Assembly (NCBI GenBank): GCA_048772705.1
Contig: JBLWGC010000115.1
Coordinates: 1-64,000, forward strand
DNA from: Leidyana gryllorum EB-2025a
Taxonomy: Eukaryota > Protista > Apicomplexa
Length of the DNA stretch: 64,000 nt
Direction of reading: 5' to 3'
The notes under the pieces are model-generated. The model was not told where the DNA came from. It ran no database searches and was given only the letters and a program-made list of their open reading frames with translations. Positions 5,117-53,388 of the stretch are shown piece by piece (within the stretch, counting starts at the first letter, position 1; the number at the start of each line of letters is the position of its first letter). A program made the translations under genes and the position numbers.

Positions 5117-5118
5117 CA

Positions 5119-9700: not shown

Positions 9701-10302
9701 AAGTATGTGGACGAGAACAACGTAGTGACGTTCAAAGGTCGGATTGCTTGTGATGTGAGCACAGTCGACGAATTAATTATTGGAGAGATGCTTTTCGACA
9801 ACGTCTTGTCGGAGTTAGATGTCGAGTACCTCTGCGCCATGCTCAGTTGTCTGGTGCATGAAGACAAACCAAGCGACAAGCCGCCCGAAGATAGCCGACT
9901 CGCTCAGCTGCACGAACAGGTCAAGCGAGTGGCACGAAAAATCGCCGAGACGTCGATTGCCAGCCGCTTGGAAGTCAATGCCGAAGATTATGTTAAGAAG
10001 TTCGACTCTTCGGTGAGCTCTACGTGGTGGTCAACAGCCTGTTTAACACACACGAACGCACACATCAGCTTATGAAAGCCACACTAATGTGGATGCGGAG
10101 CGACAGTTTTTCGCAGATTGTCAAGGAAACGACTGCCTACGAGGGATCCATTGTACGCTCTTTCAGGCGGTTAGAAGAAATGTTGAGGGATCTGGCAAGT
10201 GCTGCTAAGACCATGGGGTCGGCGAATCTGGAAGCCAAATTTTTGGATGCCATCAAAGTGCTGAAGCGTGGCATTATCTTTGCCGCCTCGCTGTACCTCT
10301 GA
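6790..10302 (+). CDS. MTR4: Ski2-like DExH RNA helicase MTR4 (introns 7195-7249, 8252-8304, 9244-9290, 9455-9501, 10013-10068)
   Basis: [43 protein letters not shown]-terminal IIFAASLYL; all five introns restore frame. Confidence 0.93.
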
Positions 10303-10370: not shown

Positions 10371-11372
10371 CTACGCATTGAAGCCTGGCATCCTCTCTGC
10401 AAACGCTTTCTGGATCTTCTCCCTCACATGGTAGGGATCTTTGGGTGCGACGGTTGTGGTACTGACCGCTCCCGTAACCTCTGCGATCTTATCCTGCGTC
10501 AACAATACCATACCCCCAGCGCCAGCGACCGGATCACCGTGTCCCTGTTCGAGTAATGACTTGACCACGCCTATCTGCCCATCCTCGGGCAGCTTGTCAT
10601 ACGGCACAGCACCCCACACGGGCAGTTTGTGCACTTGCGATACGACTCCAGCTATCTTCCGGGGCGCTCCGTCCGGAGTCTTGTCCACGTCACCGTGGAG
10701 CGTATGACCAGCTGAAGCCAGTGCGCTGTCTTCTGTACTCAGCTTGGCGAGAACATTATCCTTTTCGCCTGGTACAAACGAGCCCCGCAAGGTTTCACCT
10801 AAATCCTGGGGACCGCCTTTCTTCTCCTCCGGCTTCTTGGGGGACTCGTTGTTCTTATTGTTGTTGTCCTTGGCCGGATCGCTGCTGGCATTCTTCGCTG
10901 CCGCCTCCTCTGCCTGCTTCCTGGCTTCGTCTCTCATGGCACCGAAATCCATGGCTTGAGCGGACCGGCTGGGCTCGTCGTCAGGCTCCAGCGACATGGG
11001 TCCTCGACGCAGATAGCTGCGGGCGTTGGTGGTTGTTGGGAGACTGGCGCCCCTACGTCTCGGGAGAACGTAAGAGCCCACGTTGGCGAAGCTCATTACC
11101 TCCCTTGAGGGAGTTGCGTAGTTCGGCCCGAATGCCCAGTTAGACATCCAGGGGAATCCTCGGAGGGCTGGAGGGAGCGCAGGCCACCACCAACCAGCAG
11201 AGGGATCCAACCCCTGAGTTCGAGCTAGCCAGTTCTGCTTCGCTGGAGACATGAGAGCACAAGGACCAGTTGAGAAGGCGGCAGGCGTCGGGTGGGTGGT
11301 CCACGGATACGAAGGTAGCAACGACCACGCATTCGCAACTAGAGGAAGAAGCGCCAAACGAACGAGCGACAT
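10371..11372 (-). CDS. Secreted orphan protein, cluster gene 1 (W/P-rich N-half, SRSAQ motif)
   Basis: 333 aa ORF; signal peptide MSLVRLALLPLVANA; EPSRSAQ at ~10956-10970. Confidence 0.75.
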   Translation of the reverse strand: MSLVRLALLPLVANAWSLLPSYPWTTHPTPAAFSTGPCALMSPAKQNWLARTQGLDPSAGWWWPALPPALRGFPWMSNWAFGPNYATPSREVMSFANVGSYVLPRRRGASLPTTTNARSYLRRGPMSLEPDDEPSRSAQAMDFGAMRDEARKQAEEAAAKNASSDPAKDNNNKNNESPKKPEEKKGGPQDLGETLRGSFVPGEKDNVLAKLSTEDSALASAGHTLHGDVDKTPDGAPRKIAGVVSQVHKLPVWGAVPYDKLPEDGQIGVVKSLLEQGHGDPVAGAGGMVLLTQDKIAEVTGAVSTTTVAPKDPYHVREKIQKAFAERMPGFNA

Positions 11373-11714
11373 GGTATCTCGATGGCAAGCGTCGATGGGA
11401 AAGAGAAAAGCTCGGTCCGAGTATGAAAACCTCGCCGCAGCTTCGTGTCATTCGACACGCATCGATGGGTATACCACGTGGTGGTGGGAGTAGTACTCTT
11501 TTACACTCAGATTGTATTGGAGAGAACAATAATGCACTGATCGCGGGCCCTCCGCACATCATAATCGTAGCCGTCCGTACGGACGCTCCCAACTTGTAGC
11601 CTCCGCCCACCGTAATTACTATTCTTCATGTTGACACCAACTCACACTCTCCAGACAAGCAGTGTAGAGAGTTATGAATGTGTGTGTTCGCGAGACGCTT
11701 GGCGACGCAATCAA

Positions 11715-12662
11715 TCACACATGCAGACCCGGCAGCAAACCTTCCTGTTTACCTGTACCCGATGGGGCATAATTGCCGTCCTGGGCTTTCTGCAAGCGCT
11801 CTGCAAAGTGTCGACGTCGTTCCTCCGAGAGTCCCGTTCCTCCACCTCCCAGGGATTCGCGAGCAATGGCAATGCCTGGATCAACAGTGGTGGTGGTGGT
11901 GGTCGTCGTCGTCAGAGGTCCATCGAAGGATTGACTTTCCCTATTGATGGCCCCGTCAGTTGCATCGCGTCTGGCCTCCGCCTCCGCTCCTGCCTCTTTG
12001 GTGAATTTGGCCTTGTCGGCCTCACTGGCCCCCAGGGGTCCCAGCAGACTGGCGTCGAACTGCTTCTGCATCTCCAAGAGCCATTGATCCTTGACGTAAT
12101 TCACTCCATAGTTCCACGAGGGCAGTATGCCTTCGGCCACTCCGGCGGTCATGTCGTTTTCTCTGAGCTGATTCCAGATCTCCGTGTCGGGCCGAATATA
12201 CCCATTCTCATCAAAGAACCCGAAACCAGTCTTAAGATTCGTCAAAAGGGCATTCCCTTTGCTCAGACGGTCGGGTATGATGCCTTTATTGACCACAGCC
12301 GCAGGATTCACGGGTAATCTGGCATCGCCTCCAATTTTTGAGAGTTGTTCCAACATTTTGGGATCGAGGCCAAAGTCGCTGGGTAACGCTGAACGCACAT
12401 TCTTGAGCGGACCCGACAGCGGGTCGGCTTCCTGCACAGAGCGCGACACCCCGCCCGACGACTCAGCAGATTGAGAAGATCGGGTGGAGGATGCGGCAGG
12501 GAGCTCATAAGGCACGAGACGCGGCACAGGGATCGGGACATAAACCGGCGTCACCTCGAATACGGGCAGATGAATGATTTGTGGTGCAGCTATGAGGTTA
12601 CTCCGAGCCCAGCCTGTCATTATTCGGTCGATGAGGGACAGGAAAAGCCCACAGCCGACCAA
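11715..12662 (-). CDS. Orphan cluster gene 2 (PIPVP motif, RSSQ and RSVQ); true 5' end unresolved
   Basis: APQIIHLPVFEVTPVYVPIPVPRL and GVSRSVQ; ORF begins at TTG, possibly with an upstream exon. Confidence 0.7.
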   Translation of the reverse strand: MVGCGLFLSLIDRIMTGWARSNLIAAPQIIHLPVFEVTPVYVPIPVPRLVPYELPAASSTRSSQSAESSGGVSRSVQEADPLSGPLKNVRSALPSDFGLDPKMLEQLSKIGGDARLPVNPAAVVNKGIIPDRLSKGNALLTNLKTGFGFFDENGYIRPDTEIWNQLRENDMTAGVAEGILPSWNYGVNYVKDQWLLEMQKQFDASLLGPLGASEADKAKFTKEAGAEAEARRDATDGAINRESQSFDGPLTTTTTTTTTVDPGIAIARESLGGGGTGLSEERRRHFAERLQKAQDGNYAPSGTGKQEGLLPGLHV

Positions 12663-13338
12663 AAAGTCTCACTGTCTGCACTGTATCTCCTTATTCGCCC
12701 GGGACAAGCCGTCTCGATCCGACTGAGGCAGACAGAAAAGTGTCATAAGGTTGGTAGTTCGACCTTAAGCTGGCGAGAAGGTGGAGGCATTTCTCCAATG
12801 TCTGTTGGGCCCAACGAATCTCTTCCTCGTTTTCCACTTTTTGAAGCATCACACATTGCGACACGGCCCCGTCTCGTCTGAGACCTCTTACTCTGTTGAC
12901 CAATTACGCGTCTCCTATCTGTGGTGGGAGTATTTATGGCCACAAGGCGACATGAGACACTGGTGAGCGACGCTTATGTGTCGCCAGACGACATTGGCAC
13001 TGTAAGAAGATCGCTGAAGCCGTATCGAATAGCGGGGGTGACAAGTTTGGGAGTTTGAGAATCTGAACGTTTGGAGGGTACTCCCCTCGGAAACGTTCTG
13101 TAGGAGACGCCGCGCTGCGCTGCGCCGCGCCGTAGAGGCACAGCAAACGCAACTCGTGTCTCCAAGTGGAACGGTGTGGTGAGAGTCGTCAATGGGTGTC
13201 TCCCGCGACGACAGTGGGAGAGTGGTGCCAGGGTTGTGGAGAGACATTTGGTCACTATTTCTTCCGAGAAGGAGGAATCTTGAATGTGTGGGCGTACTGA
13301 TGATTGTTGAAACGAGGGACAGAAAAGCAAACTAACTC

Positions 13339-14096
13339 ATGAGAGCGAGCTTGCTTCTCACTGCGGTAGCGTGGGCTAATGGATGGACGTCTCCATGCGC
13401 CCCTCCCCAGGTGATCAGGACACCTATTTATCGTGTCAACGAGGTGCCATGTGAGTCGTGTCATGATGGACACCAGCACATATGTTGTCTCAGTCCCGAT
13501 CCCTGTGCCACAATTCTTTCCGATGGGTGGAGCGCGGCCGGTGAGTCAAGTTGATATCTGTTTGTATGGGGTCTCAGACGGTATTGGCGAACCAGAACGG
13601 GTGGGGCGGAGGTGCTGCCCATACATTTCAGGCTTTGATGTCTGATCACGCTGGGAGGGGGGCCTCCCGAGGTTCTGATGAGGGCCGAAAGGGGAGAGGT
13701 GGAGGGGAGAGATCGACTTCCCAGATTTCCGGATCCTCGTCGGATGAACCGAAGCGTACCACCCAGTCTCACGTGGAAGATGAGGACAACACGCACGAAT
13801 TGATTGTGAAGGGAGGGGACGGCGCGAGTGGACAAGGTATCATAATGAACAACCACGGTATTCTGAGTGGAACCAATACTGGTGTGTCTCTGCATGTGCT
13901 ATCTTCCGTGGGAAGTGGAGCCAAGTATCGCACAGTCGAAAACGAAGAGAACAAGGTGAACATTGTCAGAACCAGTCGACGGAGTGTTGGAGACCAGCAA
14001 GAATTAGAGAAGGAGGGAACTGCTCTGGACATTGGTCGCGTAGCGAAAGGCGACCAGCAATTACAAGTAGCCCCTTTGGTGTCCCCAAATGAATGA
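13339..14096 (+). CDS. Secreted orphan, cluster gene 3 (introns 13451-13493, 13541-13577)
   Basis: Spliced MRASLLLTAVAWANG-WTSPCAPPQVIRTPIYRVNEVPFPIPVPQF...; both introns GT-AG and frame-restoring; C-terminal NNHGILSG module. Confidence 0.75.
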
Positions 14097-14124
14097 AGTC
14101 GCCGGTAGGCGAAAAACTGTTGCT

Positions 14125-14595
14125 ATGCGTTGGATCACAATTGTAAAGTGCGTGCTTGCCCACCAAGCAATCTACCTCCCTCAGTTTACCTTCCGTACCG
14201 TTCCTGTGCCGATTCCGGTGCCACGATATGTACCAACGCTAATGCAGCCGCCCCCCAGCAGCACAGTCGCTGATCGGAATCAGGCATTACGGGGCAGAAG
14301 ATCAGCGCAGGCGACCGGAAGCAAGAGTGTGCAAGGGATCGATAGCTACAGCGATAGCTACAGCGACAGCGAGAGCTACAGCGACAGCGAGGAACCTGTT
14401 GATATCAACTACTACAATGGAGGATCTGCGAATGAACAGACATCGATGCAATCTCAGAACTCAGGAATTGGATCGGCGCTTCAGGTGCTGCTGGATCTTA
14501 ATGTCATCGCTGGTCTTCTGAGCAAGCAGCAAACAGTCGATAATCATGCGTCACGGCTTAATGTCAAGGGTCAGTCGGGACAGAGGCCGGCATAA
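14125..14595 (+). CDS. Secreted orphan, cluster gene 4 (PIPVP, RRSAQ, DSYS repeats)
   Basis: MRWITIVKCVLA-HQAIYLPQFTFRTVPVPIPVPRY; RGRRSAQ; NSGIGS..IAGLL..NV module. Confidence 0.75.
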   Translation: MRWITIVKCVLAHQAIYLPQFTFRTVPVPIPVPRYVPTLMQPPPSSTVADRNQALRGRRSAQATGSKSVQGIDSYSDSYSDSESYSDSEEPVDINYYNGGSANEQTSMQSQNSGIGSALQVLLDLNVIAGLLSKQQTVDNHASRLNVKGQSGQRPA

Positions 14596-14660
14596 CCGGT
14601 TCCTCCCCATTGACTGAAAAAGAATCTGAACGTACACAATACGTGACAAGCATCATCGCA

Positions 14661-15498
14661 ATGCGCGCGACTTTGCTATGCCCAGTGCTCTTGACTGTCC
14701 TGGCGACAGCTCATAACTGTATTAAAACCCCAACAACTAATGCTGCCCTACTTCGCAGTCGTGCCTTTGGCGCACCGGCACTACAAGGGATCGGTATCGG
14801 AGCAGGCGCCGGAGTCGGAGCCAAAGCGGGTGTTAGCACCCAGGGTTTCGGGGACTACTACAACCGCCCCTACTGGAATAATTACTGGCGTCCGTTTCTG
14901 ACCAGTTCGGCCTACTCCCGTCAACCCTCCTTTGACAGCTATCAGGCTGGACCCAACCGTGAGTTCTATCTGGCAACATCGAGTTTGATCAATGATACCA
15001 ACAGAGGGAGGTTCAACGCTTATCGGCGGTGGAAGCGGCCGTCAGGCTACCGTGCAGAGCTTGGATGAGAGGGTTGAGTCGCACGACGGTGGTATGTCCA
15101 ACATGGGTTGGTCAATGTCTGAGAATGCCGCGGGTGCACTCAATGACTTTAGCTTCGCCGCCAAGATCTGGGCACTCCTGTCACACATCGCCAAGGACGA
15201 CCAAGACACATCCCGCAGTGAAAGCTTCACCGACGTCGGCCCTGACCACCCCCAGCGTGAGGTTATGGCGGTGGCCCCCAGTGGCCCTAACGACGTCCAC
15301 CGCGAGCTACCTTACCCCACCAAGACCATAAATACCAATGCTGGTGAGGGTAATGTGGGCTTCCACCATGGTGTGGACAATCACGGTCTCGGAAACGGCC
15401 TCTCCGGATACCTCCAAATCATGGCCTTCCTCGCCGACGTTTTCAACTCGGAGCGGAAGGCGAGCCGGACCCGCAGTGAAACTAATGTCAACTCCTGA
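14661..15498 (+). CDS. Secreted Gly/Tyr/Trp-rich orphan, cluster gene 5 (intron 14959-15004)
   Basis: Signal peptide MRATLLCPVLLTVLATA; GIGIGAGAGVGAKAGVSTQGFG; 46-nt intron joins the ORFs in frame. Confidence 0.75.
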
Positions 15499-15792
15499 TC
15501 GCCTTTTACCTCCCACCCCTCTTGGAGAATGTAATCTGTAAATAACCTTCTATCGAACATTTATACTCTACACGCTGTAATGGCTCGAACTGACAACTCC
15601 TGACGACTTGGCGTGCCTATCGAAACAACACCGCCCCGGGCAAGCAGGCATTTGCGGGTGCGCGTTGCTTTTCCGCACCCCAATGGGAAAGGCAGTCAGC
15701 CATCTCGTTAACGTCCCGCGGTCCCGCGGCCGGTGAAAAGATCTCCATTTTCCAGTCGGCACTGCCTCAGCATCTGACCATAGTTGACCAAC

Positions 15793-16256
15793 ATGTACAG
15801 GTGGATTGTATCTACTGCTCTTGTAGCGCTTACGCGCGCGCACTATTATGATGCGTACGCATCACAGAGCTGCCCGCCACCTCAGATATACTATTGTGAG
15901 TCGCGAGAGGCCTCGAGACACGTTATATTCATTCTTCTCCTCGCTATTCAGATCCTGTGTACCGAACTGTCAATGTTGATTGGCAAATTCCGTATCCCAC
16001 CTTCAGTGCTCCCAGCACACAGGCGGTGAACGCACCCGTCGTGGCAGAACAAGGCCTCGCACGATCAGCGCAAGCGTTCCACGGAATCAATAACGTTTCG
16101 GGCGGACAGTCGAACAGTGGGGGCGGCTCCACCGTCGGTTCCAGTGGCGCCCTGAACGGTGTCAATTTGGCCGCGAAGGGTGCCGTTCTCTTATCCAACC
16201 TCCTCGCCAAAGAACAAACTTCTCGCTGGGACAGCAGTTCGATCTCGGCGCACTAA
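15793..16256 (+). CDS. Secreted orphan, cluster gene 6 (intron 15896-15951)
   Basis: MYRWIVSTALVALTRA-HYYDAY..CPPPQIYYYPVYRTVNVDWQIPYP..GLARSAQ..SSGALNG module. Confidence 0.78.
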
Positions 16257-16323
16257 TCGCAGGCCCAGGGACACTTTGCGTCATATGTGAAAACATACAT
16301 TGTTTAGTAATCGCAATGCTCCT

Positions 16324-17079
16324 ATGCATCATATGTTAATCAACCCACTTCTTATTCTATATCACTATTTGGAGTGCGTTCCTGCTCTCTCACGTATCAA
16401 TGGATCAGGTGGGGTGGCCCTCCAGCTTCCGAACTATACACAAGTGGACTTTGTTCAACCCCCCCATTTCGGCACCACCGTAGCTCAGGTCGAACATGAT
16501 TCTGACAGCTACTTATCGCAATCGCCAGCACAAGTTGGGCAAACCGGAAGCTTGCGCGCTCAGGCCGAACAACCTCTTCCAATCAGCACTAACCACCGAG
16601 CACCACACCAACTTGTCGTCGAGGCTGGCGCGATTCACTCCAATGCGCTCAGAGGGACTTCCACAGACCGTAAAAAAGACATCCCCCACAACAGTGGGAT
16701 CGACCCAGTAGCTGACGACCACTTGGAAGCTGCCCCCCCAACGACCAGCAGTACCACTTCAAACCGGCTGCAGCCCGTTAGGCAAAACTCAAATGCACCA
16801 AGCCAAAGAAAGACACAGCCGGACGAGGCGAAAGCAGTGATTACCAGCCCAACGACGACGACTACTACACCCTCACTGACGAAAACGCACATTTCCACAA
16901 CCACACCTGACGCTCTCACAAGTTCGGAAGAAGACTCAAGTGTGCTAAGACACAATGACGCATCGAGAGACTCACAATCCATATTGAATAGCTTTGTCAA
17001 TAAAGTCAATGAGTATCGTTTACGGCGAAAGAAGCTTTTCAGACCGGGCCAACTGATTCCGGTGACGACGGAAATGTGA
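16324..17079 (+). CDS. Probably secreted Thr/Ser-rich (mucin-like) orphan, cluster gene 7
   Basis: Hydrophobic N-terminus (MLINPLLILYHYLECVPA); poly-Thr; C-terminal PGQLIPV resembles PGQVVPI in gene 8. Confidence 0.65.
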   Translation: MHHMLINPLLILYHYLECVPALSRINGSGGVALQLPNYTQVDFVQPPHFGTTVAQVEHDSDSYLSQSPAQVGQTGSLRAQAEQPLPISTNHRAPHQLVVEAGAIHSNALRGTSTDRKKDIPHNSGIDPVADDHLEAAPPTTSSTTSNRLQPVRQNSNAPSQRKTQPDEAKAVITSPTTTTTTPSLTKTHISTTTPDALTSSEEDSSVLRHNDASRDSQSILNSFVNKVNEYRLRRKKLFRPGQLIPVTTEM

Positions 17080-17137
17080 TTTAGGTTTTCAGCACCTCCA
17101 GCAGGCTTGATAGGAAAAGTGTGCATATCGCATCCAA

Positions 17138-17906
17138 ATGATGCGGAAGCTCGTGTTCTCAGCCGTTCTGGCAATTGGAAGTTCTGCAAGCGATTGGGGT
17201 TTCCTCGGATGGGATACCGGTCTTGCTCGTTCCGCTGGCCGTCACCAAGCCGTCGATGAAGAATTGCAGTTGGCACTCGCCTTGCTGAGCATTCCCCCTC
17301 CGCCTATATCGAACTTGCCTCCGTTGGTGATCCCAGTCCCGTTTCCGGTGCAAGTGCCGGTGTACGTGTCAGCTCCGACTACCGCCGGTGTTTCGCGGAC
17401 TGCGCAATCTTTGCGGGGTGGCGGTTCAGCCCCTCCCGCCGGAGCGGCAGGTGGCTCTTTGGTGAAGCAGGTGCAGGGGACGGCGAGGAAGTCTCTCGAA
17501 GATCTGGTAGACGGTGGCAAGCATGAGCAGGACGTCAACCGTCCTCTTACACCTTATCATCCTGGTCAGGTGGTGCCCATCGAGGAGGTTTCCAACGGTA
17601 AGGCGTGAGATATCTGAGGGTTATCGAGCATCAGCTCCTCAATCGGTTGACAGAGACGGAGTAGCGAGGAGCGTTCAGGCCGCTGAGGATGGTGGCGAGC
17701 CCCAAAATCACCACCACCACCACCATGGTGGTGTAGGAGATGTTCGTCAAATCTTTGGAGGAGATTCGTCGCAACAGACAGTTCTGCAGGATGGTAACAA
17801 AGGTATTGGGGTGGCTAACAATTTCTACACCTCCCTCGGATTGCTCGACAACTGGGGATCGCAGAAGCAGACAACGCAGAAGAGTTCCAATCAACTGACG
17901 TCATGA
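17138..17906 (+). CDS. Secreted orphan, cluster gene 8 (intron 17598-17634)
   Basis: Signal peptide; ARSAG, VSRTAQ, VARSVQ; IPVPFPVQVP; His6 tract; NKGIG module. Confidence 0.78.
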
Positions 17907-17923
17907 GCTCAGCCGGATTGTTA

Positions 17924-18655
17924 TCAACGTTGGTGAATCGTAGTATTCTTCTTTTTTACGTCTTTGCCGCGATACTCGCCGCCTGCGATACCCGCAAGTA
18001 TTGGCAACTCACCGCTGAAAAACATGTTTGTCAGTATCCCTTCTCCCCCCTTTTGATAATAAGCATTGTCTTCTAGATCATCTCCCGTGAAGGTCATCTG
18101 CACAGATCGCTCGGGAGTTTTGCCGTCCTCGCCGTCAGACTGTGGGGAGGCTTTGGGCGACGCCTCACCGGCCTCCACGTCTTGACTTGTTACGGACCAC
18201 TTGGAGGAACTGGTGAATGCGGTTGCGGGAGAACCAGACACAAAGGTTGTTGGAGGACCGGGCTGAGCGTACACCACTGTGGTGCTGGGCTGGGTGTAGA
18301 CGACGCTAGCAGGCGGGGGACTGTAAAATACAGTCGATCCTCCTCCAAGAGCCGTAAAAGATGGAGTGCTTCCTGGTATCACCACGATCTGTGTCGTGCC
18401 TCCCGCCACACCCGGACTGTATGACACGGTGGAGGACGACGAAAAGTCGACTTGGTACTTCGGAATGTTCCGAGCTGTCATAACAGCTTGAAGGTATGCG
18501 CGCCGATCGTTTTGAGCCGGAAATAGGCCTTCATTGCCGTACCCAGGCAGCCGGCTCGCCATGGGCCGACCATATTGCAAGTGGACATGAGGGAGCCATC
18601 CACAAGAGGCTTCCGCCAGGCCATGAGCGATAACGAGACCAATCACGTGTCTCAT
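17924..18655 (-). CDS. Secreted orphan, cluster gene 9
   Basis: MRHVIGLVIAHGLAEA; repeated TV(S/F/V)Y(S/T/A)xP units; ERSVQ; GEGIL..LAGIA module. Confidence 0.75.
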   Translation of the reverse strand: MRHVIGLVIAHGLAEASCGWLPHVHLQYGRPMASRLPGYGNEGLFPAQNDRRAYLQAVMTARNIPKYQVDFSSSSTVSYSPGVAGGTTQIVVIPGSTPSFTALGGGSTVFYSPPPASVVYTQPSTTVVYAQPGPPTTFVSGSPATAFTSSSKWSVTSQDVEAGEASPKASPQSDGEDGKTPERSVQMTFTGDDLEDNAYYQKGGEGILTNMFFSGELPILAGIAGGEYRGKDVKKKNTTIHQR

Positions 18656-18830
18656 GAGAGATGCCCCGAAGCTTTTTCTCGGGAGGGCTCTACATAAGTC
18701 CCATCAATAAGCCCAAGACCGTCACTGCTTTTACTCCTCCGGTGCTTACAACTGGGTGGGCTGCAGTCATATTACGTCTCATATTTGGTCAGTTAATGGC
18801 ATATAGCAGTAGCGTTAAGAATGTGCGATT

Positions 18831-19390
18831 CTAATAACGGCGGTGACTGTACATATTGGTCAGGTCGATGTTGCTCGAGGATGATTGCTGGTTGTTCGCG
18901 TCTCCGAGAACTCCGTTCGCAACGTTAGCACGGAGGCTTCCACTAGCGCCGTTGAGGGCACCGTTTTCCATGTTACGGTGGTTAGTCACGCGAGCTGCGT
19001 CGTCATTCTGAGATCCGCTGGGCAACGCTTGGGCGGTACGCGACAAGCCACCACGAACACCGTAACCACGATTCCACCAGCCGCCTGCCGTTCGAAGCAT
19101 AAATGTAGCGTCCTTCACCTCACTCACGGTTGTATCTACCCCAAGGATAGTAATTACGGCGGCCCCAGCCACCCCAGGGTCCGTCCCACTCTCCGAAACC
19201 TGTTAGGGGGAGATTTGTTGTTGCCAGTGCATGTTCACTAACCTTGGGTGGAGACACCAGCACCAGCACCAACGCCGACCCCGAGCCCCGCAGGGCTGGG
19301 TGCAGTGCCTGCGGTATAAGCGGTATAAGCGGTATCACAGTGGGCTGTGGCCGCAGCGATCAGAGCAGATCCAATAATAGCAAATTTCAT
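18831..19390 (-). CDS. Secreted Gly/Trp/Tyr-rich orphan, cluster gene 10 (introns 19200-19242, 19085-19127); paralogue of gene 5
   Basis: Manual splice: MKFAIIGSALIAAATAHCDTAYTAYTAG..GLGVGVGAGAGVSTQGFGEWDGPWGGWGRRNYYPWGRYNRGWWNRGYGVRGGLSRTAQ..; two 43-nt introns; missed by the ORF track. Confidence 0.8.
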
Positions 19391-19556
19391 GTTGCCTTAA
19401 GTTTGTCCAGTTGTGAGGGACCAGCGGTCAACCATGAAAGGAGCATTTTTCATACAATCCCAATGACCCATCATGCCTCCCTCATCTTTCGTGGGAAAAT
19501 CGGGAGGAAGTGGGTCGCAGAATCCACACCGTAGAATATACACTGTTCACTCAGAG

Positions 19557-19573
19557 CACACACACACACACAC
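19557..19573. repeat. (CA)n microsatellite
   Basis: cacacacacacacacac in the intergenic region upstream of cluster gene 10. Confidence 0.7.
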
Positions 19574-19702
19574 CGTGCGTACGGCACTCAGCCCCGCTCA
19601 ATCAAAAAGCAGCAGTAAAGCCCCAGATGAACATACTAGACATCAGTATTACACATTTATGCAGAATCTATGCGATAATGCACCGGTCGCGGAAAGCTTT
19701 TT

Positions 19703-20156
19703 TTACGGTGAACCTGTCGGCAGCCCTATGGGCCGATTAGCGATATATCCCTGGGCTGTTCTTGACAACGGGCGCTCGGTGCGATGCAGCGACGCGATAA
19801 TAGTGTCGTCGATCCGGCCGGTTCCGGAGCCCCTGTGCCGCAGCAATAGAAAGGGTTGCCCAAATGTTGAGAGCGCAGACACAGGGCCTCTAAAGATTCG
19901 CAGGTGATCTCACCTTGTCGAGCAGTACAGCCTCCTCGGGACTGGAGTGCGTGAGTTCTCTCAGTCGCCTGCGGTGCTGCTGATGACATCCGTTCCGCTG
20001 TGTGGCTCGCCCATAGTACCCGAAATACGAGGGCTTTCTGACGAACCCTCTAATCGGTCGTCTGGACCGGAAAGGTCGCAGATACCATGAGTGACCCATC
20101 ACTAGATTGCACCAGATGGGGATCAAAAGGATCAGAATCAGAGTAGGAACTCGCAT
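19703..20156 (-). CDS. Secreted Arg-rich orphan, cluster gene 11; 3' exon structure unresolved
   Basis: Signal peptide MRVPTLILILLIPIWCNLVMG; a downstream frame encodes ..RPLSRTAQGY..* (SRTAQ at 19751-19765, stop at 19703). Confidence 0.5.
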
Positions 20157-20484
20157 ATTGTCCCGATAAGGGTCACTTTTTCATTAGCCAGCGGTGGTAA
20201 AGTGACGTCGGTGTGCTTGACGAGCTGCCCACTGTTCATCCCTGGTTACACAATTTACATAGGAAGGCTCCCGAGCAAGAAAAGACGAGAAAGTACCAAT
20301 GTGGGGTGTATCTGGTGTATAGGAAGATTATTACTTTACTACTTGTCAGAGTGTAGAAACAAAGTGTCTTCCGGTTCCCAAAGGTTATATAATAGGCGAG
20401 AAAGCAATAAAGGAATACATCATACTCGTTCTGATGTCGTCATCGAGGCGGTCAAAGTGGCAGGTATGCTGCTTCGAGAGCGAA

Positions 20485-20793
20485 CTAAGGGATTGGCAGA
20501 CTCGGAGTTGACGGGAGAGCTCCAGTGGCTCCACCAGTCACTGCCCCAGCACCTGCGAGAGGGTTGGGGAAGCCGATCGACCCCGAGAAGGTGGCCGAAG
20601 GGAAGAAGGGCAAGAACGCAGGAGGAGTGAGACCGAAGCTGTAGGTAAAGTCGGCCGGGCCCCGGAGTATCGGCCTCGCGAAAGGACCCAGTGCAACAGG
20701 CGGAGTGTAGCAGGGATGCATCGAAGTCTTATAATAGTCGTACATTCCCATCGCGGGGGTCAACAACAGAACGAGTGACGTATATTTGAGCAT
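20485..20793 (-). CDS. Small secreted Pro-rich orphan, cluster gene 12
   Basis: MLKYTSLVLLLTPAMG signal peptide; YTPP..PFAR motif also in gene 14. Confidence 0.7.
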   Translation of the reverse strand: MLKYTSLVLLLTPAMGMYDYYKTSMHPCYTPPVALGPFARPILRGPADFTYSFGLTPPAFLPFFPSATFSGSIGFPNPLAGAGAVTGGATGALPSTPSLPIP

Positions 20794-20883
20794 TTTTGTT
20801 CCCAGCGTGGTATTACTATAATACTTAGGTATCGTTGATTTCTTGAAAAAGCGTGAATACCGTCCCAGTGGGAAGCGGTTTGG

Positions 20884-20915
20884 GTGTTCCCTGAGCTATT
20901 AGTGTTCCCTGAGCT
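20884..20915. repeat. Perfect 14-nt direct repeat (gtgttccctgagct x2, 4-nt spacer)
   Basis: Seen directly; ~90 nt upstream of the ATG of gene 12. Confidence 0.7.
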
Positions 20916-20973
20916 TCATCTCATACTATGAGATTCACAGACAAATATCCGATCATTCGTACGATCTTAACAC

Positions 20974-21681
20974 TCATTGTAAAATAACATTTCCTCCTGC
21001 CCCGCGAGGCCACCATGGCGGCGGCGGGACCTCAGGATCCCCTCCCGGTGGCTGAGTGGCTCCCGGAGGTAGCGTTGGGGCGACTGTCGGGATTGGAGTA
21101 GGTAGCGGAGGTCCTGGAGTTGTAATTGGCGGTGGTAAGGTCGGCACTGCCGTTGGTCCAGTAGGCGGGAGTGTCGGCACTGCCGTTGGTAAAGTCGGAA
21201 TCGGCGGCGGTAGAGTTGGAATTGGTGGCGGTAAAGTCGGGATCGGTGGCGATAAAGTCGGGATCGGTGGCGGTAGAGTCGGGATCGGTGGCGGTAGAGT
21301 CGGAAACGGCGGCGGTATCACAATTGGAGGCGGCCAACTATGCGAATGGTGGTGATGGTGGTACCCATTTGGTGGCCAAGTTCCCGGAGGGTAGGTTCCA
21401 GGGGGATAAGTTCCAGGGGGATAAGTCCCGGGAGGATAGGTGCCAGGAGGATAGTGGGATGCCTTATGGCTTTTGTGCGACCCCCAATACGCAGGGGGGA
21501 CGACGAAAGGGGGTCCTACAGGAGGTCCAATAGGGGGTCCTGTGGGAGGGCCAATAGGGGGCCAATTCCATAGTCCGCTTTTCTGCTTCCAATGACTATT
21601 GGTTCAGGTGGCAGGGACGCCTCCATACCCCTTATACCAGGCTTTGTAGGCTTGGTGAGTTAGGTATGGATTGGCGTACAT
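20974..21681 (-). CDS. Extensin-like Pro/Tyr/His-rich protein, cluster gene 13 (intron 21596-21628)
   Basis: Spliced MYANPYLTHQAYKAWYKGHWKQ..(GPP)n..(YPPGT)x5..HHHHHSH..(PTLPPPI)n; 33-nt intron restores frame; no obvious signal peptide from this ATG. Confidence 0.7.
21125..21454 (-). repeat. Coding tandem repeats: 15-nt YPPGT x5 (~21380-21454) and 21-nt PTLPPPI units (~21125-21310)
   Basis: Tandem units visible in DNA (ccagggggataagtt; gtcgggatcggtggcggtaga). Confidence 0.85.
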
Positions 21682-21870
21682 TGAATTGCGATATATATAT
21701 TTCTTTGCCTCATGGTTTGAATGACCTAGTGCTTCTAGAGCCAGGACAAAGACCGCAAGTTTTTGGCGCATCCTTTCAAGGAGCTCGGGTTGGGGTTTTT
21801 ACAATGACCGAGCGGAAAGAGGGTGAGATTTCTTGGAAAAGCCGCCTCAAATGTCCTGGTCACTGGGTCA

Positions 21871-22569
21871 TCAGATGTTAACATTGTCCTCCTTGTAATT
21901 CTTATTCTTGAATTTCCCCACCAGACCAGACAGAGCGCTAGCACTAAGCCCAATGCCGCCGTTGTTCAGTCCAGAAGTAAGCTCCTTGCCCTCACCGAGC
22001 TTAGTCTTCACTTGGGGGACAGCTTTGGAGAGGTCGGTCGCATCCCCCAAGTCCATCTTTGGCGATTTCTGCGATCCTTCTCCCGCCTGATCTCCGAATG
22101 CTTGCGCGGATCGAGCGGGCTCCCGGCTCTTCTCGTCAGTTGACTGGGCTGCTGACGCCTGCCCTCTTTTCCCTGTTGTCGCCAGAAAGCTGACAGGCCT
22201 CCTATTGCCAGTAGCCGTGGGTGTGTGGTCCACTTCTTGAATCCGCGCGGAAGGCCCTCCGTAGTAAAAGGGCGATAATCCGGGTGAAAGCCCCCATCGA
22301 GGGAACGAAATTCGCTCATCCTCCAAGAAAGGAAATAAAGGATCGATAAACGGGGACAGCCTCTTGGCAAGCGAGAAATCCGGGAATGTGTTGATCCGTG
22401 TGTACCTGCTTTGACGGGCAAATGGCGGAGTGTAGACCGCTGGCAAACGAGACAGGATGGGAGTTCTAGTCATTCCATCCAACATGCGATAGGCGTATTC
22501 CAGGCACGGTACATTCCCACTGACTCCACACGACACTAGTCCAAGCAAGTAGATCGTACCGACTCGCAT
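21871..22569 (-). CDS. Secreted orphan, cluster gene 14
   Basis: MRVGTIYLLGLVSCGVSG signal peptide; EPARSAQ; terminal GLNNGGIG..LSGLV..NVNI module. Confidence 0.75.
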   Translation of the reverse strand: MRVGTIYLLGLVSCGVSGNVPCLEYAYRMLDGMTRTPILSRLPAVYTPPFARQSRYTRINTFPDFSLAKRLSPFIDPLFPFLEDERISFPRWGLSPGLSPFYYGGPSARIQEVDHTPTATGNRRPVSFLATTGKRGQASAAQSTDEKSREPARSAQAFGDQAGEGSQKSPKMDLGDATDLSKAVPQVKTKLGEGKELTSGLNNGGIGLSASALSGLVGKFKNKNYKEDNVNI

Positions 22570-22631
22570 AGTGCAAGACAGCAAACTGTTTTTCCGAACC
22601 GCACTCAGTCGTCACCGACCGGCCCAAAGAC

Positions 22632-23102
22632 ATGCTTTCCGCCAGACTTTTGATATGCTGCAACGTTGCCAACGTCCTGCTGGTCTATCACCAAGCAGAG
22701 GCTTTCCGGCACGGAGACGCCATATCGGTGTCTCCCAAGAGCACACATCTGACGAGTTCGCGTCGACGAGCAATCTTGCCTCCCATGCGAGGAACCGCAA
22801 GAGAAGCCACCGATGATGAGGGTTAGTAGTACTCGACAGATTGATAGTAATTTATATGCCGTGCAGCGGACTCGGATATGAGGAGCGGGGCCGATGTGGA
22901 AGAGGAAGGTGAAAAGGACGTCGTAAGTGATCTGAAGATCTGCCAAGATCGCCTGGAGTTCTTGGAAGAAATTGTCAATCTATTGGAGGCAGACGCAGCG
23001 AGGTGTCAAAGCCGTCTTCGTGAGCCTCTTTGGGAACATCATGACACAACCGAAGCCATCGACGAGATCTTGGGTGATGTCCCAACTGAAGATGAGGAAT
23101 GA
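22632..23102 (+). CDS. Probably secreted acidic coiled-coil orphan, cluster gene 15 (intron 22822-22866)
   Basis: 45-nt GT-AG intron joins the 22632 and 22878 ORFs in frame; hydrophobic N-terminus ending AEA. Confidence 0.6.
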
Positions 23103-23137
23103 CGGGGAAAAGGAAATCACGTCACGTCAAAGTTGTC

Positions 23138-24637
23138 ATGAGTTCTTCTCTACATCTCTGTGTGCTTGGGCTCGTGCTCGCAAGCCGGGCCAACGGCTAC
23201 TCAGCCCTCGATCATATCGTCAATGTCGGCTATCACTTGCGACATCGGCTAATCAGAGACCTCTACCGCACCGCTGATTACATCCACGACCACACCGTCA
23301 GGGCAGTGGGCGCACCAGCAGGATTGTATGACCACTTGCCGGGATCTCCATACTATGAGATGTTGACACCCGACTCCGGGCCTGTGTATGACGGAATCTT
23401 CAGTAAAGACTATCAGGGGTCCTCCGGGGAATACGACAGCGCGCAGGCATATGCTGACCGCGAGCCACCCGCCGTCGCCGCCGCTAATGTACTGCCAGCC
23501 GTTCCAGGTCAGCCACTGCCCGATTTCATGCGCGGCGATGCGATGGAGGCTGGTCCTGCCATGTGGCTCGGAGAAGGCGACATGTCAACATATGCACTGG
23601 GCGACGGGAGTTTCGGCTTGGAGGACGATACCCCCCCAGCCTGGTACTTCAGAGCAGAGGGTGACCAAATCAGAGAGCCACAAGATGGTCTATCGGCATT
23701 TGCAGAGATGACGAGTGGCTTCAGCGACTCTCTCCAAGGAGCTGGGGACTCTTACAGCCAGTCCGAGACACAAAGTGCTGAGACTGAGGAGTCAGTCAGC
23801 GAGAGCTACGAGCAGAGCTCAAGCTATGTCTCTTCGGACGCCGACCCCTTCTTTTTCGGCAGATCAAATCAGGACACCACCGTCACAGCGTCCGCGCTAC
23901 AGAGTCGCGGTGTGCAGCCACTGAGCAGTGGAGAGAAGCATCTCCAGACATTCCGGGGTGGATCTGCCTCCTCGGCCGTCCCTACCAGAAGAGCTGCGAC
24001 TGTCGGAGGGTCTCAGTCAACATATGACGCTTTTGAGACAGAAAGGTCGTCCACGTCAGTGAGCCGACTCGAGTCTCGATTGGCAAATCTTGAAGCCGAG
24101 TTGGCTTCTCGTGAAGGCGGCTGTCCATACAGCTTCAACTTGGGGGGCTCTCTGACCCCTTCGAGTCTTTTGGCCTTTGTCGACGACGACAACATGGAAG
24201 AGCAGCTCTTGGAGGACCGCACTCAGAGCGAAAGATTGGCCCTTTGGAAAGGGGCTGCCAAGATGCTCGCAACAATGTTCCGCGCTCAATTGGTCGACAG
24301 GGCAGCTCTCCGGCCTCAGGCGTTGAGCGCTACGCGGGCTCAGATGGGTGCTATTTCCACTTCCAGTGCTGAGGCGAGTGCAGCGGCTCAAACACAAGCA
24401 ACGGCCAGCGCAACTGCGGAATCTGGGGCGTCTTCCCAAACTATCAACCAGAACTTTTACCAGAATCCGACAGCTGCCTGGAATACCCCGGGCAGTGTTG
24501 CTGTCATACCAGTCCAACCCCCTCCACCGAAACACACAGGACTGATCAAGGCAGTGGCCGATGCAGCTGACCAGGCACTCACCGGTGTCGGCGAAGGCGT
24601 TAACACTTTGACAGACGGTTTGACACAAGCGCTGTGA
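23138..24637 (+). CDS. Secreted Ser/Ala/Tyr-rich orphan, cluster gene 16
   Basis: MSSSLHLCVLGLVLASRANG signal peptide; His/Tyr-rich N-terminus; short coiled coil. Confidence 0.75.
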   Translation: MSSSLHLCVLGLVLASRANGYSALDHIVNVGYHLRHRLIRDLYRTADYIHDHTVRAVGAPAGLYDHLPGSPYYEMLTPDSGPVYDGIFSKDYQGSSGEYDSAQAYADREPPAVAAANVLPAVPGQPLPDFMRGDAMEAGPAMWLGEGDMSTYALGDGSFGLEDDTPPAWYFRAEGDQIREPQDGLSAFAEMTSGFSDSLQGAGDSYSQSETQSAETEESVSESYEQSSSYVSSDADPFFFGRSNQDTTVTASALQSRGVQPLSSGEKHLQTFRGGSASSAVPTRRAATVGGSQSTYDAFETERSSTSVSRLESRLANLEAELASREGGCPYSFNLGGSLTPSSLLAFVDDDNMEEQLLEDRTQSERLALWKGAAKMLATMFRAQLVDRAALRPQALSATRAQMGAISTSSAEASAAAQTQATASATAESGASSQTINQNFYQNPTAAWNTPGSVAVIPVQPPPPKHTGLIKAVADAADQALTGVGEGVNTLTDGLTQAL

Positions 24638-24674
24638 GATTTTTCGTGTCCATACACCCGTTTTTTCCGGAACC

Positions 24675-25094
24675 ATGCGGCTATTGATTGGTTTACTTGC
24701 GATCACGTCGACATGTTTGGCAGCAACGCCACGGTTTCTTCAACCGCTACCGGCATTATCAGATCCCGGAAGCTTCATGCGTGAAGAAGTCACTCAGTTC
24801 AGCGAGCGCGTGGCTGCAGCCTCAGCTCGAGGAGCCGCCGAAGGTTTCACAGACCGAATGATGAAACAGCCCTCACCAATAGACGGAGTAGGGGGTGTGT
24901 TGCTCGGTCCATTGCATAACTTGGATAGAGGAACGCAAAGCTATACTGCTGACTCGGGGGGTGAATCTACTTTGGCTTGGGACATCAAAGCTTATCGTGA
25001 ATTAGCGAGACATTTTGCATCGACGCTAGCGAAGATCAAGCTCCATAACGACAGTCGGCTGGCTGCGGCGATGTCACATCTCGTAGGAAAGTAA
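24675..25094 (+). CDS. Small secreted orphan, cluster gene 17 (possible short paralogue of gene 16)
   Basis: MRLLIGLLAITSTCLA signal peptide; shares QPLP..FMR, GF(S/T)D and LAxxxxAxxxLAxxFxxxL with gene 16. Confidence 0.72.
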   Translation: MRLLIGLLAITSTCLAATPRFLQPLPALSDPGSFMREEVTQFSERVAAASARGAAEGFTDRMMKQPSPIDGVGGVLLGPLHNLDRGTQSYTADSGGESTLAWDIKAYRELARHFASTLAKIKLHNDSRLAAAMSHLVGK

Positions 25095-25133
25095 TCGACA
25101 CTGGTTTTTCTAGCGGCCGGAACATCAACTGCA

Positions 25134-25784
25134 ATGCGCGTACCGATTCTTGTCAGCTTATTTTATGTGTCAACAGCGACTGGTGATTGGTTCAAGAAGA
25201 AGAAGAACTACGGCTTCAGACCGCTATCGCTCTACGATGACTACGACTATGATGACGACTTCCGATCTCTTCGGCGGTCTCAACGGCCAATCATCATCGA
25301 AAGCCCATCGCAGCAGTATCCGCCCATCATAGTGCAACAACCAAACCCTAATGTCATGCCGTGTGGACAATGTCAGACGCCATGTGCAACCTGCAATCAA
25401 CAGCCCAGTACAACACCACCATGGATGTTCTATCCGCCGCCACACTACTATCCGCCTCAATACCCACCGTACTATCCTCCTCAGTATCCTCCTCAGTATC
25501 CTCCGCAGTACCCTCCACAATACCCTCCGCAATATCCGTCATACTCTTACGGGGGCCGCGGTACCGGCCACGGCGACGGCGGACTGCTGCCAAACTTGCT
25601 GGATACTTTGCTGGGCGACGGCAAGCACACTGATGGGAATCTCAGGCGGCTACCTGCTGTGGCAGGACCACCCGGTGCTCCAGGAGTGCCGCAAGGGACA
25701 GGTCATGGTGATGATGGCCTGGTGCCCAACCTCTTAGACGCTTTACTGGGCGACGGGAAACATACAGACGGCCGAATGAATTGA
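25134..25784 (+). CDS. Secreted Tyr/Pro-rich wall-like protein with (YPPQ)n and two GHGD-PNLLD repeats, cluster gene 18
   Basis: Signal peptide; CGQCQTPCATC; YPPQ tandem repeat; two 26-aa repeats. Confidence 0.8.
   Translation: MRVPILVSLFYVSTATGDWFKKKKNYGFRPLSLYDDYDYDDDFRSLRRSQRPIIIESPSQQYPPIIVQQPNPNVMPCGQCQTPCATCNQQPSTTPPWMFYPPPHYYPPQYPPYYPPQYPPQYPPQYPPQYPPQYPSYSYGGRGTGHGDGGLLPNLLDTLLGDGKHTDGNLRRLPAVAGPPGAPGVPQGTGHGDDGLVPNLLDALLGDGKHTDGRMN
25429..25517 (+). repeat. Coding 12-nt tandem repeat (YPPQ/YPPY)
   Basis: tatcctcctcag-type units repeated about 7 times. Confidence 0.85.
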
Positions 25785-25876
25785 GCGAACGTGTGTGAGA
25801 CACCGCGTATCCTCTTGCCTCTCTGTGCCCTTCAAAAATCGTGAACCTCAATTGTACTACTTAGATCTCGGTGTCA

Positions 25877-26359
25877 ATGATCCGCGCTCTGTTGTCTCTC
25901 GTGTACATGCTAACGAACATTCATGCTCATCATCCAGTCTATGGTGGATACTACCCCCATAAGCATCACTTGCGGCGAGCCTCGCTGCCGATGTACCCGT
26001 ATTCCATGGGTTATGGCATCCTTCCCCCGTCACCAATTCTTTCCTATGAACTGTCTGAGCTCACGTCTCCTTATTGGCCAATTCAGTCGGCTGGATACTA
26101 CCAAAGCGGTCTGCCTCTGTACGGTGCACCAAGTGCGTACCTGGCGCCATCTGCAGCGTCTCCAATACAGATTTTCCCCGGCGGAGTGCAGGTACTTGAC
26201 AGCCGACGATACCGAGGTTCGTCTGGAGGTCACCTGCGTCTCGCAGGTATCCGAACGGGTCACGGAGACGACGGAATAATCCCCAATCTCCTGGATGCCT
26301 TGTATGGGGACGGTCGATTTACGGACGGGAAGCTTATCCGCCTTACGTATGAAGATTGA
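25877..26359 (+). CDS. Secreted Tyr/His-rich protein with one GHGD-PNLLD repeat, cluster gene 19
   Basis: MIRALLSLVYMLTNIHA signal peptide; TGHGDDGIIPNLLDALYGDGRFTDG. Confidence 0.78.
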   Translation: MIRALLSLVYMLTNIHAHHPVYGGYYPHKHHLRRASLPMYPYSMGYGILPPSPILSYELSELTSPYWPIQSAGYYQSGLPLYGAPSAYLAPSAASPIQIFPGGVQVLDSRRYRGSSGGHLRLAGIRTGHGDDGIIPNLLDALYGDGRFTDGKLIRLTYED

Positions 26360-26492
26360 CAGAGGATTAAATAGTAGAAGACTCGATTGAAGATAGTTAG
26401 AGAACCGTAAAACGCCTGAAATGTGCATGTTGAGAAGTCAATCGGAAAACCAGTGTCAATTCACATACAATATTGAGTACATTGCAGAAAGC

Positions 26493-27947
26493 ATGCGTCC
26501 GCTTATATTAGCACTCGTCAGTGTTTTAGTCAGCGGAGATGTGTCCACTGACCCTCCTGCCGAGCGAATTGAAGTGGTTGATGAGGCCCCACTGTTTGGA
26601 GAGCCATCAACCCCCCGAAATGAAAGGGCACTAACGGAATTGGACATTGAAGAAGCTGTTGCCCGCCTTGAACAAATCATACCTTCAATGTCTCCTGAAC
26701 TTCTGAGAACAGTTATCAGACAAGAAGATGGGAGCCTCTCTCTTTCGCTGGTCCCACCGGCTCAACAAGTTGCGATAATCTCTGCTGCATTGGCATACGC
26801 GGTGGGAGATCAAGTTCCTGAAGTGGCACGTTCGACTCCGACGGCTGCCGCTCGTAGTGCCACAGAGATCACTATCCCTTTTTTACCTCTGGTTCCCCCA
26901 CGCATCCAGTTGCCGCAGGCTCTCGTCCAGCCGCGGGTTCCCAACTCACCTCCCGTGAGTAATGGTTGGGGTTTCCTTTCGGACGACTGGATGCAACAAT
27001 ATGTGGTACAGCCGCTGCAAGCAGCAGCTGCAGCGAATCCGCTGCTCAACTTCAATCCTGCGGCTCATCGCGGTCTCAAGCAGACATCAGAGCCCCCCCC
27101 CTCAGTGGGTGAGGCTCCGAAGGCTGAGGGCGGGAATATGTTGAGCGACGAGGTGCTGGCTGGTATGGAAATGAGTTCTGATTACTCAGATGAATTCAAG
27201 TGGTTTGTTAAAGAGGTAGCAAAAGCGCAAGGTGATATGGACAAATTGGTCGACGTCGTTCGGAAGTACTTTACTGAGGTGAAGCCTCCGCGACCTCGAC
27301 GACTCACGGCACAGTCGGACGGAACTTTTCAAGAGAACGTGAAGCTGAGCGCCAAATACTTGAAAGAGCAGCTTGGAAAGGACGCATTCCTGGCTCAGCC
27401 CATCCCTGAGGTCTATCTCAAAGCTTCGCGCACATTCCTTCGGGCGCTGCCTCAAGAGGTGCAGGATACTCTGATGGATAATCTCAAACGCCTCAGTCCT
27501 GCTCAGGACGATACAGCATTTATCAGGTACTTGTCGGAGTTCCCAATTGCTGAGACTGACCGATCTGCCACGCTCTTTTTGATAAGATTCCGCGAAGCAG
27601 TTCGGGCCAAGCCGTCTCCTCGTGCAGCGGCTCCGTCTTCTGTCAAGGAGCCGGCGTCTGAGACAGCTTCCGCGCCTCAGCAACGGGCTGAGGTCAGTAG
27701 TGACGGCTCAGCCGCAAAACGCACCGATACGACAGACAGCGCTTCCAGGTTCCTCCGAGGTTTCCTCTTGCCGAAAGATGCTCTGCCGTTGGCTGCTGAC
27801 TTGCCGCCGCCGCCGCCGCGTTCTCAGCTCCCAGCTTACGAAGATTTGGCGGGAACGGATCCGGTAGTCAAACAAATCGAAGACAACCTGAAGCACACTC
27901 TCAAACTCCCTCTTCAGTTTTTCGCTGATCTTCGCAATATTTGGTGA
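26493..27947 (+). CDS. Secreted largely helical orphan, cluster gene 20
   Basis: MRPLILALVSVLVSG signal peptide; ARST, ARSAT and RRLTAQ motifs. Confidence 0.75.
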   Translation: MRPLILALVSVLVSGDVSTDPPAERIEVVDEAPLFGEPSTPRNERALTELDIEEAVARLEQIIPSMSPELLRTVIRQEDGSLSLSLVPPAQQVAIISAALAYAVGDQVPEVARSTPTAAARSATEITIPFLPLVPPRIQLPQALVQPRVPNSPPVSNGWGFLSDDWMQQYVVQPLQAAAAANPLLNFNPAAHRGLKQTSEPPPSVGEAPKAEGGNMLSDEVLAGMEMSSDYSDEFKWFVKEVAKAQGDMDKLVDVVRKYFTEVKPPRPRRLTAQSDGTFQENVKLSAKYLKEQLGKDAFLAQPIPEVYLKASRTFLRALPQEVQDTLMDNLKRLSPAQDDTAFIRYLSEFPIAETDRSATLFLIRFREAVRAKPSPRAAAPSSVKEPASETASAPQQRAEVSSDGSAAKRTDTTDSASRFLRGFLLPKDALPLAADLPPPPPRSQLPAYEDLAGTDPVVKQIEDNLKHTLKLPLQFFADLRNIW

Positions 27948-32062
<4,115 letters not shown>

Positions 32063-32965: not shown

Positions 32966-32977
32966 AAATGCATACAT

Positions 32978-53371: not shown

Positions 53372-53388
53372 ATTTCAGGAAAAGAATT

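Follow-up and report, generated by a model that had tools for sequence, protein, structure and literature searches.

A 17.6-kb island of predicted secreted orphan proteins in a gregarine genome: a possible locus of precursors for an extracellular structure

The first 64 kb of contig C115 (hereafter the window) of the gregarine Leidyana gryllorum, whose assembly comprises 15.5 Mb in 237 contigs, contains an island of 20 gene models (10371-27947; Table 1) lying between an MTR4/Ski2-type helicase and a PRP43-like helicase. This arrangement agrees with the original prediction made from the DNA alone, which described about 20 orphan genes in four co-oriented runs between MTR4 and PRP43: the flanking proteins carry the respective helicase domains, and the genes, read from both strands, form runs of two on the minus, six on the plus, six on the minus and six on the plus strand. 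The island spans 17.6 kb, of which 80% is coding, without a single interrupting housekeeping gene, and seven of its co-oriented spacers measure 28-67 nt. The models are predictions, with the introns inferred from GT..AG boundaries and frame continuity; introns in the window are short, at 33-59 nt, which together with the alveolin and the PFO-CPR fusion encoded there is consistent with a gregarine-like apicomplexan. Both the GC content of the island and its GC content at third codon positions (GC3) match those of the remaining window and hence give no hint of foreign DNA; horizontal transfer was accordingly rejected.

The island was confirmed to be real and well beyond chance expectation. Signal-peptide-like starts, called by a hydrophobicity heuristic rather than by SignalP, are found in 18 of the 20 genes, in line with the approximate proportion given in the original prediction, as against 11 of 104 background open reading frames (ORFs) drawn from ~246 kb. 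The two genes failing the heuristic are g02, the weak model of the island, when given its simplest start (ATG 12620), and the borderline g04, which probably possesses a short signal. A heuristic scan of the mature island proteins recovered neither a clear transmembrane segment nor a glycosylphosphatidylinositol (GPI)-type tail, and none of them has a 19-residue stretch above a Kyte-Doolittle (KD) value of 1.65. The combination of a signal-like peptide with the lack of a membrane anchor suggests that the products are soluble cargo of the secretory pathway. Just beyond the island, an orphan ORF adjoining PRP43 (30965-32062, minus strand) begins with a weakly signal-like segment, matches no Pfam family and may be another secreted orphan.

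The claim that these proteins are unrecognised withstood a check with hidden Markov models (HMMs) and family searches: Pfam returned no match for any of the 20 genes, each represented by at least its main exon, and no homologue emerged for the genes searched further, namely g02, g16, g18, g19, g20 and the members of the set designated A2. Spliced genes were searched exon by exon. Against 5.8 billion proteins, with targets confined to 0.55-1.75 times the query length, g18 retrieved only two bacterial low-complexity matches and g16 none; the A2 profile had 0 matches among 1.84 billion representatives, the ESM Atlas returned nothing for g20 and g02, and an exact look-up of ten island proteins in a 15-billion collection found them absent. 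These blanks are bounded by the length windows, the low complexity of the queries and the sparse gregarine data. Within the genome itself, the tested genes and profiles match this locus only, the weak outside matches on contigs C230 and C177 being chance frames. Single-sequence structural models were poor, with a predicted local distance difference test (pLDDT) score of 58 for the g20 core and 42 for the g02 core, making fold searches with g20 meaningless. With regard to plant-type extensins, g13 has no Pfam match while g09 reaches 13.4 bits against Extensin_2, under the cut-off of 20.8. A synteny query based on PARG found no match, PRP43 loci from metagenomes (identity at most 62%) lack an island homologue, and an Rfam scan was blank.

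An all-versus-all comparison resolves the island into three groups: some ten loosely related genes forming a family (g01-g06, g08-g10 and g14), the g18/g19 pair, and eight singletons (g07, g11, g12, g13, g15, g16, g17 and g20), with no significant sharing between g15-g20 and g01-g14. Within the family, g02, g03, g04, g06 and g08 have in common a Pro/Val N-terminal module (best pairs with E ~1e-5 to 1e-6), whereas g05 and g10 both display GVSTQG and the same intron position. The patterns [PV]IP[VY]P and GHGD each match four times in the island versus never in the background, and the three GHGD-PNLLD modules of g18 and g19 are 65-74% identical. When leave-one-out profiles were made of a C-terminal Gly/Asn/Leu module, g03, g04 and g08 ranked 1 of 1932; the module is weak in g06, g14, g10 and g05 (ranks 2-5) and unsupported in g09 (rank 78). 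The original prediction had taken the island for a single unrecognised family with shared modular motifs. What survives of this is that PIPVP, R[ST][AV]Q, GVSTQG and GHGD are enriched or recovered and that part of the island is indeed one family; the motifs, however, do not span the island, and the whole is a composite of family, pair and singletons. A frame overlapping PRP8 was considered as an additional family member and rejected.

Of these motifs, R[ST][AV]Q occurs at nine sites in eight island genes (4,665 aa) versus once in 55,173 background residues, this sole background match lying in a probably non-coding frame; 2000 shuffles yielded a mean of 0.29 and a maximum of 3. Every one of the six Arg codons appears among the nine sites, and third positions vary, which indicates that the constraint acts on the protein and not on the DNA. 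The motif sits at a compositional boundary: across it Pro falls in all eight genes (from 6-22% to 0-7%), Tyr plus Trp usually falls, and acidic residues approximately double or more in six of the eight, thereby separating a Pro/aromatic N-terminal part from a Pro-poor, usually more acidic C-terminal part. R[ST][AV]Q hence probably behaves like a processing site, to judge from these sequence patterns. To our knowledge it has not been described as a cleavage signal in apicomplexans. R|S-A/V (convertase-like) and R-x-hydrophobic-x| (S1P-like) are both patterns of subtilases, which offers a lead only. An extended DNA pattern of the motif is found 43 times genome-wide (control 20), with 4 occurrences in the island and 39 in the other 15.5 Mb; it is thus ~90-fold denser in the island than elsewhere, the outside matches being known as a DNA pattern only. 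A second dense cluster of RS[AV]QG was tried and rejected. Genome-wide there are 36 exon matches to the subtilisin domain Peptidase_S8, one of them at 125 kb on the island's contig. Separately, we observed tandem arrays of such subtilisins at C35:276050-291495 (with ~seven loci on that contig) and C43:235812-358927.

A further recurrent feature is the sequence GAAAA or TTTTC, located 10-80 nt upstream of 18 of the 20 island starts (shuffle mean 2.6). The background figure is 13 of 94 automatic starts, or 6 of 20 with the strictest start filter, in a control that includes false starts. Housekeeping genes, MTR4, PNO and PRP8 among them, likewise have the element ahead of their starts, on account of which its role as an island-specific regulator was rejected; it may instead belong to the core promoter of genes in this genome generally. 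In either orientation it was seen 15-50 nt upstream of many such starts (window positions 6790, 44019 and 5119; L030 7352; L023 6960; L025 5397). In the island it supports the assigned start codons and the presence of what would be separate promoters. The very short co-oriented spacers in a compact apicomplexan genome recall the polycistronic transcripts of Cryptosporidium (PMC11761812); unlike those, each of the seven short island spacers holds this promoter-type element, which would favour separate promoters. Elsewhere in the window, three co-oriented ORFs (32282-35696, plus strand) have stop-to-ATG gaps of 12 and 7 nt; they may be exons of fewer genes or represent more ultra-short spacers.

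Comparison of the composition of the island with the background gives 3.5 versus 2.5% for Tyr, 2.3 versus 2.5% for His, 9.8 versus 6.2% for Pro, 9.3 versus 6.2% for Gly and 0.4 versus 1.6% for Cys, with 0-4 Cys per mature protein. Hence, of the Tyr/Pro/His/Gly-rich low complexity originally reported, the Pro and Gly enrichment is general, whereas His is not enriched and Tyr-rich patches (6-10 Tyr per 30 aa) are limited to g05, g06, g13, g18 and g19. Tyr-Pro repeats and His tracts, which are typical of structural coats, are found in g13, g18 and g19.

Several known apicomplexan systems bear on these features. In Eimeria, wall precursors form clusters, are rich in Tyr or in His/Pro, and undergo cleavage, probably by subtilisins, at motifs that begin with Arg (PMC5718062, PMC4345034, PMC3770453). 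The island resembles the gam56/gam82 cluster, GAM22 and GAM59 in its clustered genes, signal peptides (here by heuristic) and segments of low complexity (Tyr/Ser/Pro/Gly or His/Pro) with Arg-initiated motifs at their boundaries, for which subtilisin-type processing has been proposed in Eimeria (PMC5718062, PMC4345034, PMC3770453). However, the Eimeria cluster has three genes and the island twenty; the GAM motifs are RNMG, RxL, RRL and RRxG in place of R[ST][AV]Q; and the long Tyr-rich domains of the GAM proteins contrast with short patches in the island. In the GAM frame a Tyr-rich domain lies between RNMG/RxL and RRL, with CxxC following (PMC5718062). The island does not reproduce it: RRL occurs only in g11, g18 and g20, and g18 has its Cys cluster before the Tyr repeat and no Cys after RRL. 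There were no Eimeria proteins among the results of the g18, g16 and A2-profile searches, of which the word-based ones were length-limited. The likeness to GAM56/GAM82 that had been proposed is therefore restricted to the minority of about five proteins with Tyr-rich patches. The COWP/OWP oocyst wall proteins are likewise secreted and have a proposed wall role; they are distinguished by regularly spaced Cys-rich repeats, of which the Cys-poor island has none. Thus, the Cys depletion and the small Tyr excess exclude COWP membership and render the GAM analogy partial.

Cryptosporidium in turn possesses homologous and heterologous clusters of signal-peptide-bearing, disordered, motif-sharing paralogues that are processed at a short motif (PMC8687662, PMC13241007). 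Its MEDLE and dense-granule (DG8) clusters share with the island lineage-specific proteins having signal peptides, disorder, common short motifs and processing beyond the signal peptide, the latter being putative in the island (PMC8687662, PMC13241007). Many of these clusters are subtelomeric while the island is lodged between two RNA helicases; the Cryptosporidium export motif needs Leu, which R[ST][AV]Q lacks, and no sequence match was found. The LEA8x0 genes of Toxoplasma, again clustered, disordered and lineage-restricted, serve an environmental stage (PMC10128015); they are four genes of LEA character, whereas the island has no LEA match in Pfam.

Taken together, we tentatively favour the view, with confidence somewhat short of an even chance, that the island is a lineage-specific locus encoding precursors of a single extracellular structure, the likeliest candidates being the wall or matrix of the gametocyst and a non-COWP layer of the oocyst. 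Under this proposal each gene, with its own start, promoter-type element and signal-like peptide and lacking an anchor, would yield soluble secretory cargo, as the sequence features indicate. About ten of the genes might have arisen by local duplication, inversion and module shuffling, with unrelated secreted genes sharing the locus. Going by the motif statistics, a subtilisin-type protease would cut R[ST][AV]Q C-terminal to its R or to its Q, to release a Pro/Tyr/Trp-rich, often basic N-terminal peptide from a Pro-poor C-terminal part, whose moderately hydrophobic terminal module could act as a sorting or solubility tail. Finally, by analogy with Eimeria GAM56/82 and GAM22 (PMC4345034, PMC3770453), the peptides set free in this way, together with the repeat proteins g13, g18 and g19, might form a matrix hardened by Tyr cross-links. 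Certain observations weigh against this proposal: Tyr is barely enriched and His unenriched overall, R[ST][AV]Q is absent from the fourth run (g15-g20), and the upstream element, being present at housekeeping starts as well, does not prove co-regulation. Moreover, by comparison with Cryptosporidium, signal peptide, disorder and clustering would fit dense-granule or exported proteins equally well (PMC8687662, PMC13241007).

The main rival follows from this last point, i.e. that the products are host-interface secretory-granule cargo of a feeding or attaching stage (for the epimerite, mucous gliding trail or surface coat), in which R[ST][AV]Q would serve as a maturation signal. We regard it as a genuine though lesser possibility: the Cryptosporidium precedent of clustered, motif-processed secreted paralogues (PMC8687662, PMC13241007) speaks for it, as do the composition of the island proteins, the majority being rich in Ser/Thr/Gly/Pro and not in Tyr, and the mucin-like character of g07. 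However, the PEXEL/TEXEL and MEDLE signals require Leu (PMC8687662), which is missing from the island motif; RxL-type sites are not enriched in the island, where the Leu-containing host-targeting motif RxLx[EDQ] is confined to g11 and g20, so that the proteins do not conform to PEXEL/TEXEL/MEDLE. The Tyr-Pro repeats of g13, g18 and g19 would also be more in keeping with a structural polymer than with an effector. If the island is instead a duplication nursery without a common function, one tandem family would retain the motif by descent and its singleton neighbours would have unrelated secreted roles at different stages, as the eight singletons and the motif-free g15-g20 might suggest; yet all eight singletons are signal-bearing, which at the background rate of ~0.1 is very unlikely by chance, and the 17.6 kb are uninterrupted by housekeeping genes. 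We consider a nursery quite unlikely.

It is highly improbable, in our estimate, that the genes encode precursors of membrane-active or antimicrobial peptides, from which the Gly/Leu/Asn C-terminal module would be released to guard the cyst or the parasite against gut or faecal microbes. In g04, g06, g09 and g14 no 18-mer is more hydrophobic than this module, which lies 14-24 residues from the C-terminus and may resemble melittin-like peptides; against this, its hydrophobic moments are low (0.11-0.32), its net charge is between -1 and +1, Pfam offers no match and at most eight genes would be accounted for.

Returning to the precursor locus, its boldest form holds that the island is the complete, co-expressed parts list of the gametocyst wall or matrix, made of a new family matured at R[ST][AV]Q, with an origin separate from that of the coccidian GAM and COWP systems; this we hold to be doubtful. 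We know of no protein components of the gregarine gametocyst wall or matrix, and our search of the literature on gregarine gametocysts and genomes found no described gametocyst-wall protein set. The type of arrangement is already known from the three gam genes of Eimeria, the four LEA genes of Toxoplasma and the Cryptosporidium clusters, while the protein family, the size of the cluster and the R[ST][AV]Q signal appear to be new. The locus provides a set of twenty named candidates together with a sharply defined prediction of a cleavage site. Were it a wall locus, clustered wall precursors matured by proteases would have evolved in Apicomplexa on at least two occasions; were it to supply host-interface cargo, it would be a gregarine counterpart of the Cryptosporidium secreted clusters.

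Table 1. Predicted genes and other features of the island and its two flanks (window coordinates)
Feature	Position	Strand	Description
MTR4/Ski2-type helicase, left flank	6790..10302	+	DEAD and DSHCT domains
g01	10371..11372	-	333 aa, intronless; signal-like; N-part rich in Trp/Pro, RSAQ at residue 136, C-part charged; weak relationship to g14
g02	11715..12620	-	PIPVP module, RSVQ; simplest start ATG 12620 without signal; speculative spliced start 12849
g03	13339..14096	+	225 aa; two introns (13451-13493, 13541-13577); PIPVP, Gly/Asn module
g04	14125..14595	+	156 aa, intronless; PIPVP and RSAQ, Ser-Tyr spacer of acidic character, Gly/Asn module; starts 28 nt past g03
g05	14661..15498	+	263 aa, one intron; GVSTQG, Tyr/Trp/Asn patch, two C-terminal modules; g10 paralogue
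g06	15793..16256	+	135 aa, one intron; N-part rich in Tyr; RSAQ and C-terminal module
Example R[ST][AV]Q site (g06)	16062..16073	+	other sites near 17396 (+), 19029 (-), 22102 (-)
g07	16324..17079	+	~251 aa; Thr/Ser-rich, mucin-like singleton
g08	17138..17906	+	243 aa, one intron; Pro/Val and C-terminal modules, both RTAQ and RSVQ, His tract
g09	17924..18655	-	243 aa; Ser/Thr/Pro/Tyr-rich, RSVQ; convergent with g08, gap 17 nt
g10	18831..19390	-	157 aa, two introns; GVSTQG, Trp/Tyr/Gly/Arg patch, RTAQ
g11	19890..20156	-	88 aa, longer if spliced; signal-like, Arg/Tyr-rich singleton
g12	20485..20793	-	102 aa; signal-like, Tyr/Pro/Gly-rich singleton
g13	20974..21771	-	254 aa, one intron; 33% Pro, extensin-like composition; Tyr-Pro-Pro repeats, His tract, 21-nt tandem repeats
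g14	21871..22569	-	232 aa; Pro/Phe/Arg N-part, RSAQ, weak C-terminal module
g14/g15 divergent spacer	22570..22631	.	62 nt; one GAAAA/TTTTC element (22590) common to both starts
g15	22632..23102	+	141 aa, one intron; acidic singleton
g16	23138..24637	+	499 aa, intronless; His/Tyr N-part, segments rich in Ser/Glu and in Ala; no homologue found
g17	24675..25094	+	139 aa singleton
g18	25134..25784	+	216 aa; four-Cys cluster, Tyr-Pro-Pro-Gln repeat (10 Tyr/30 aa), two GHGD-PNLLD modules
g19	25877..26359	+	160 aa; 11% Tyr; one GHGD-PNLLD module
g20	26493..27947	+	484 aa; Pro/Ala linkers flank probably helical core (aa ~215-375, low-confidence model)
PRP43-like DEAH helicase, right flank	27960..30570 (3' end approximate)	-	N-terminus resembles PRP43

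Several other genes were noted along the window and beyond it. To the left of MTR4 lie an alveolin that combines an IMCp domain with a tail rich in Thr/Asn/Tyr/Gln (1053-2411, plus strand) and tandem PARG-like ORFs (3565-6396, plus strand): the PARG macro domain is found in 4376-5116 and 5119-6396, and 3565-4509 resembles a matching N-terminal part, making two diverged PARG genes probable. To the right, an intronless gene of 1800 aa (38617-44019, minus strand) encodes a pyruvate:NADP+ oxidoreductase (PNO), a PFO-CPR fusion with PFO and flavodoxin/FAD/NAD domains, of the type known from Cryptosporidium and Euglena. Next to it lies a 1506-aa frame (44185-48702, minus strand) with matches to DUF3223 and RRN3, which is either a fusion or two genes sharing one open frame. 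Orphan ORFs of 280-420 aa (36072-37343, which has no Pfam match, and 52229-53374 in the window; also at L021) look by eye like a dispersed F-box/LRR-like family. On another contig, a broken Ty3/gypsy-like retroelement (C121:182112-185128; L045) retains pieces of the gag zinc knuckle, protease, reverse transcriptase and integrase in different frames.

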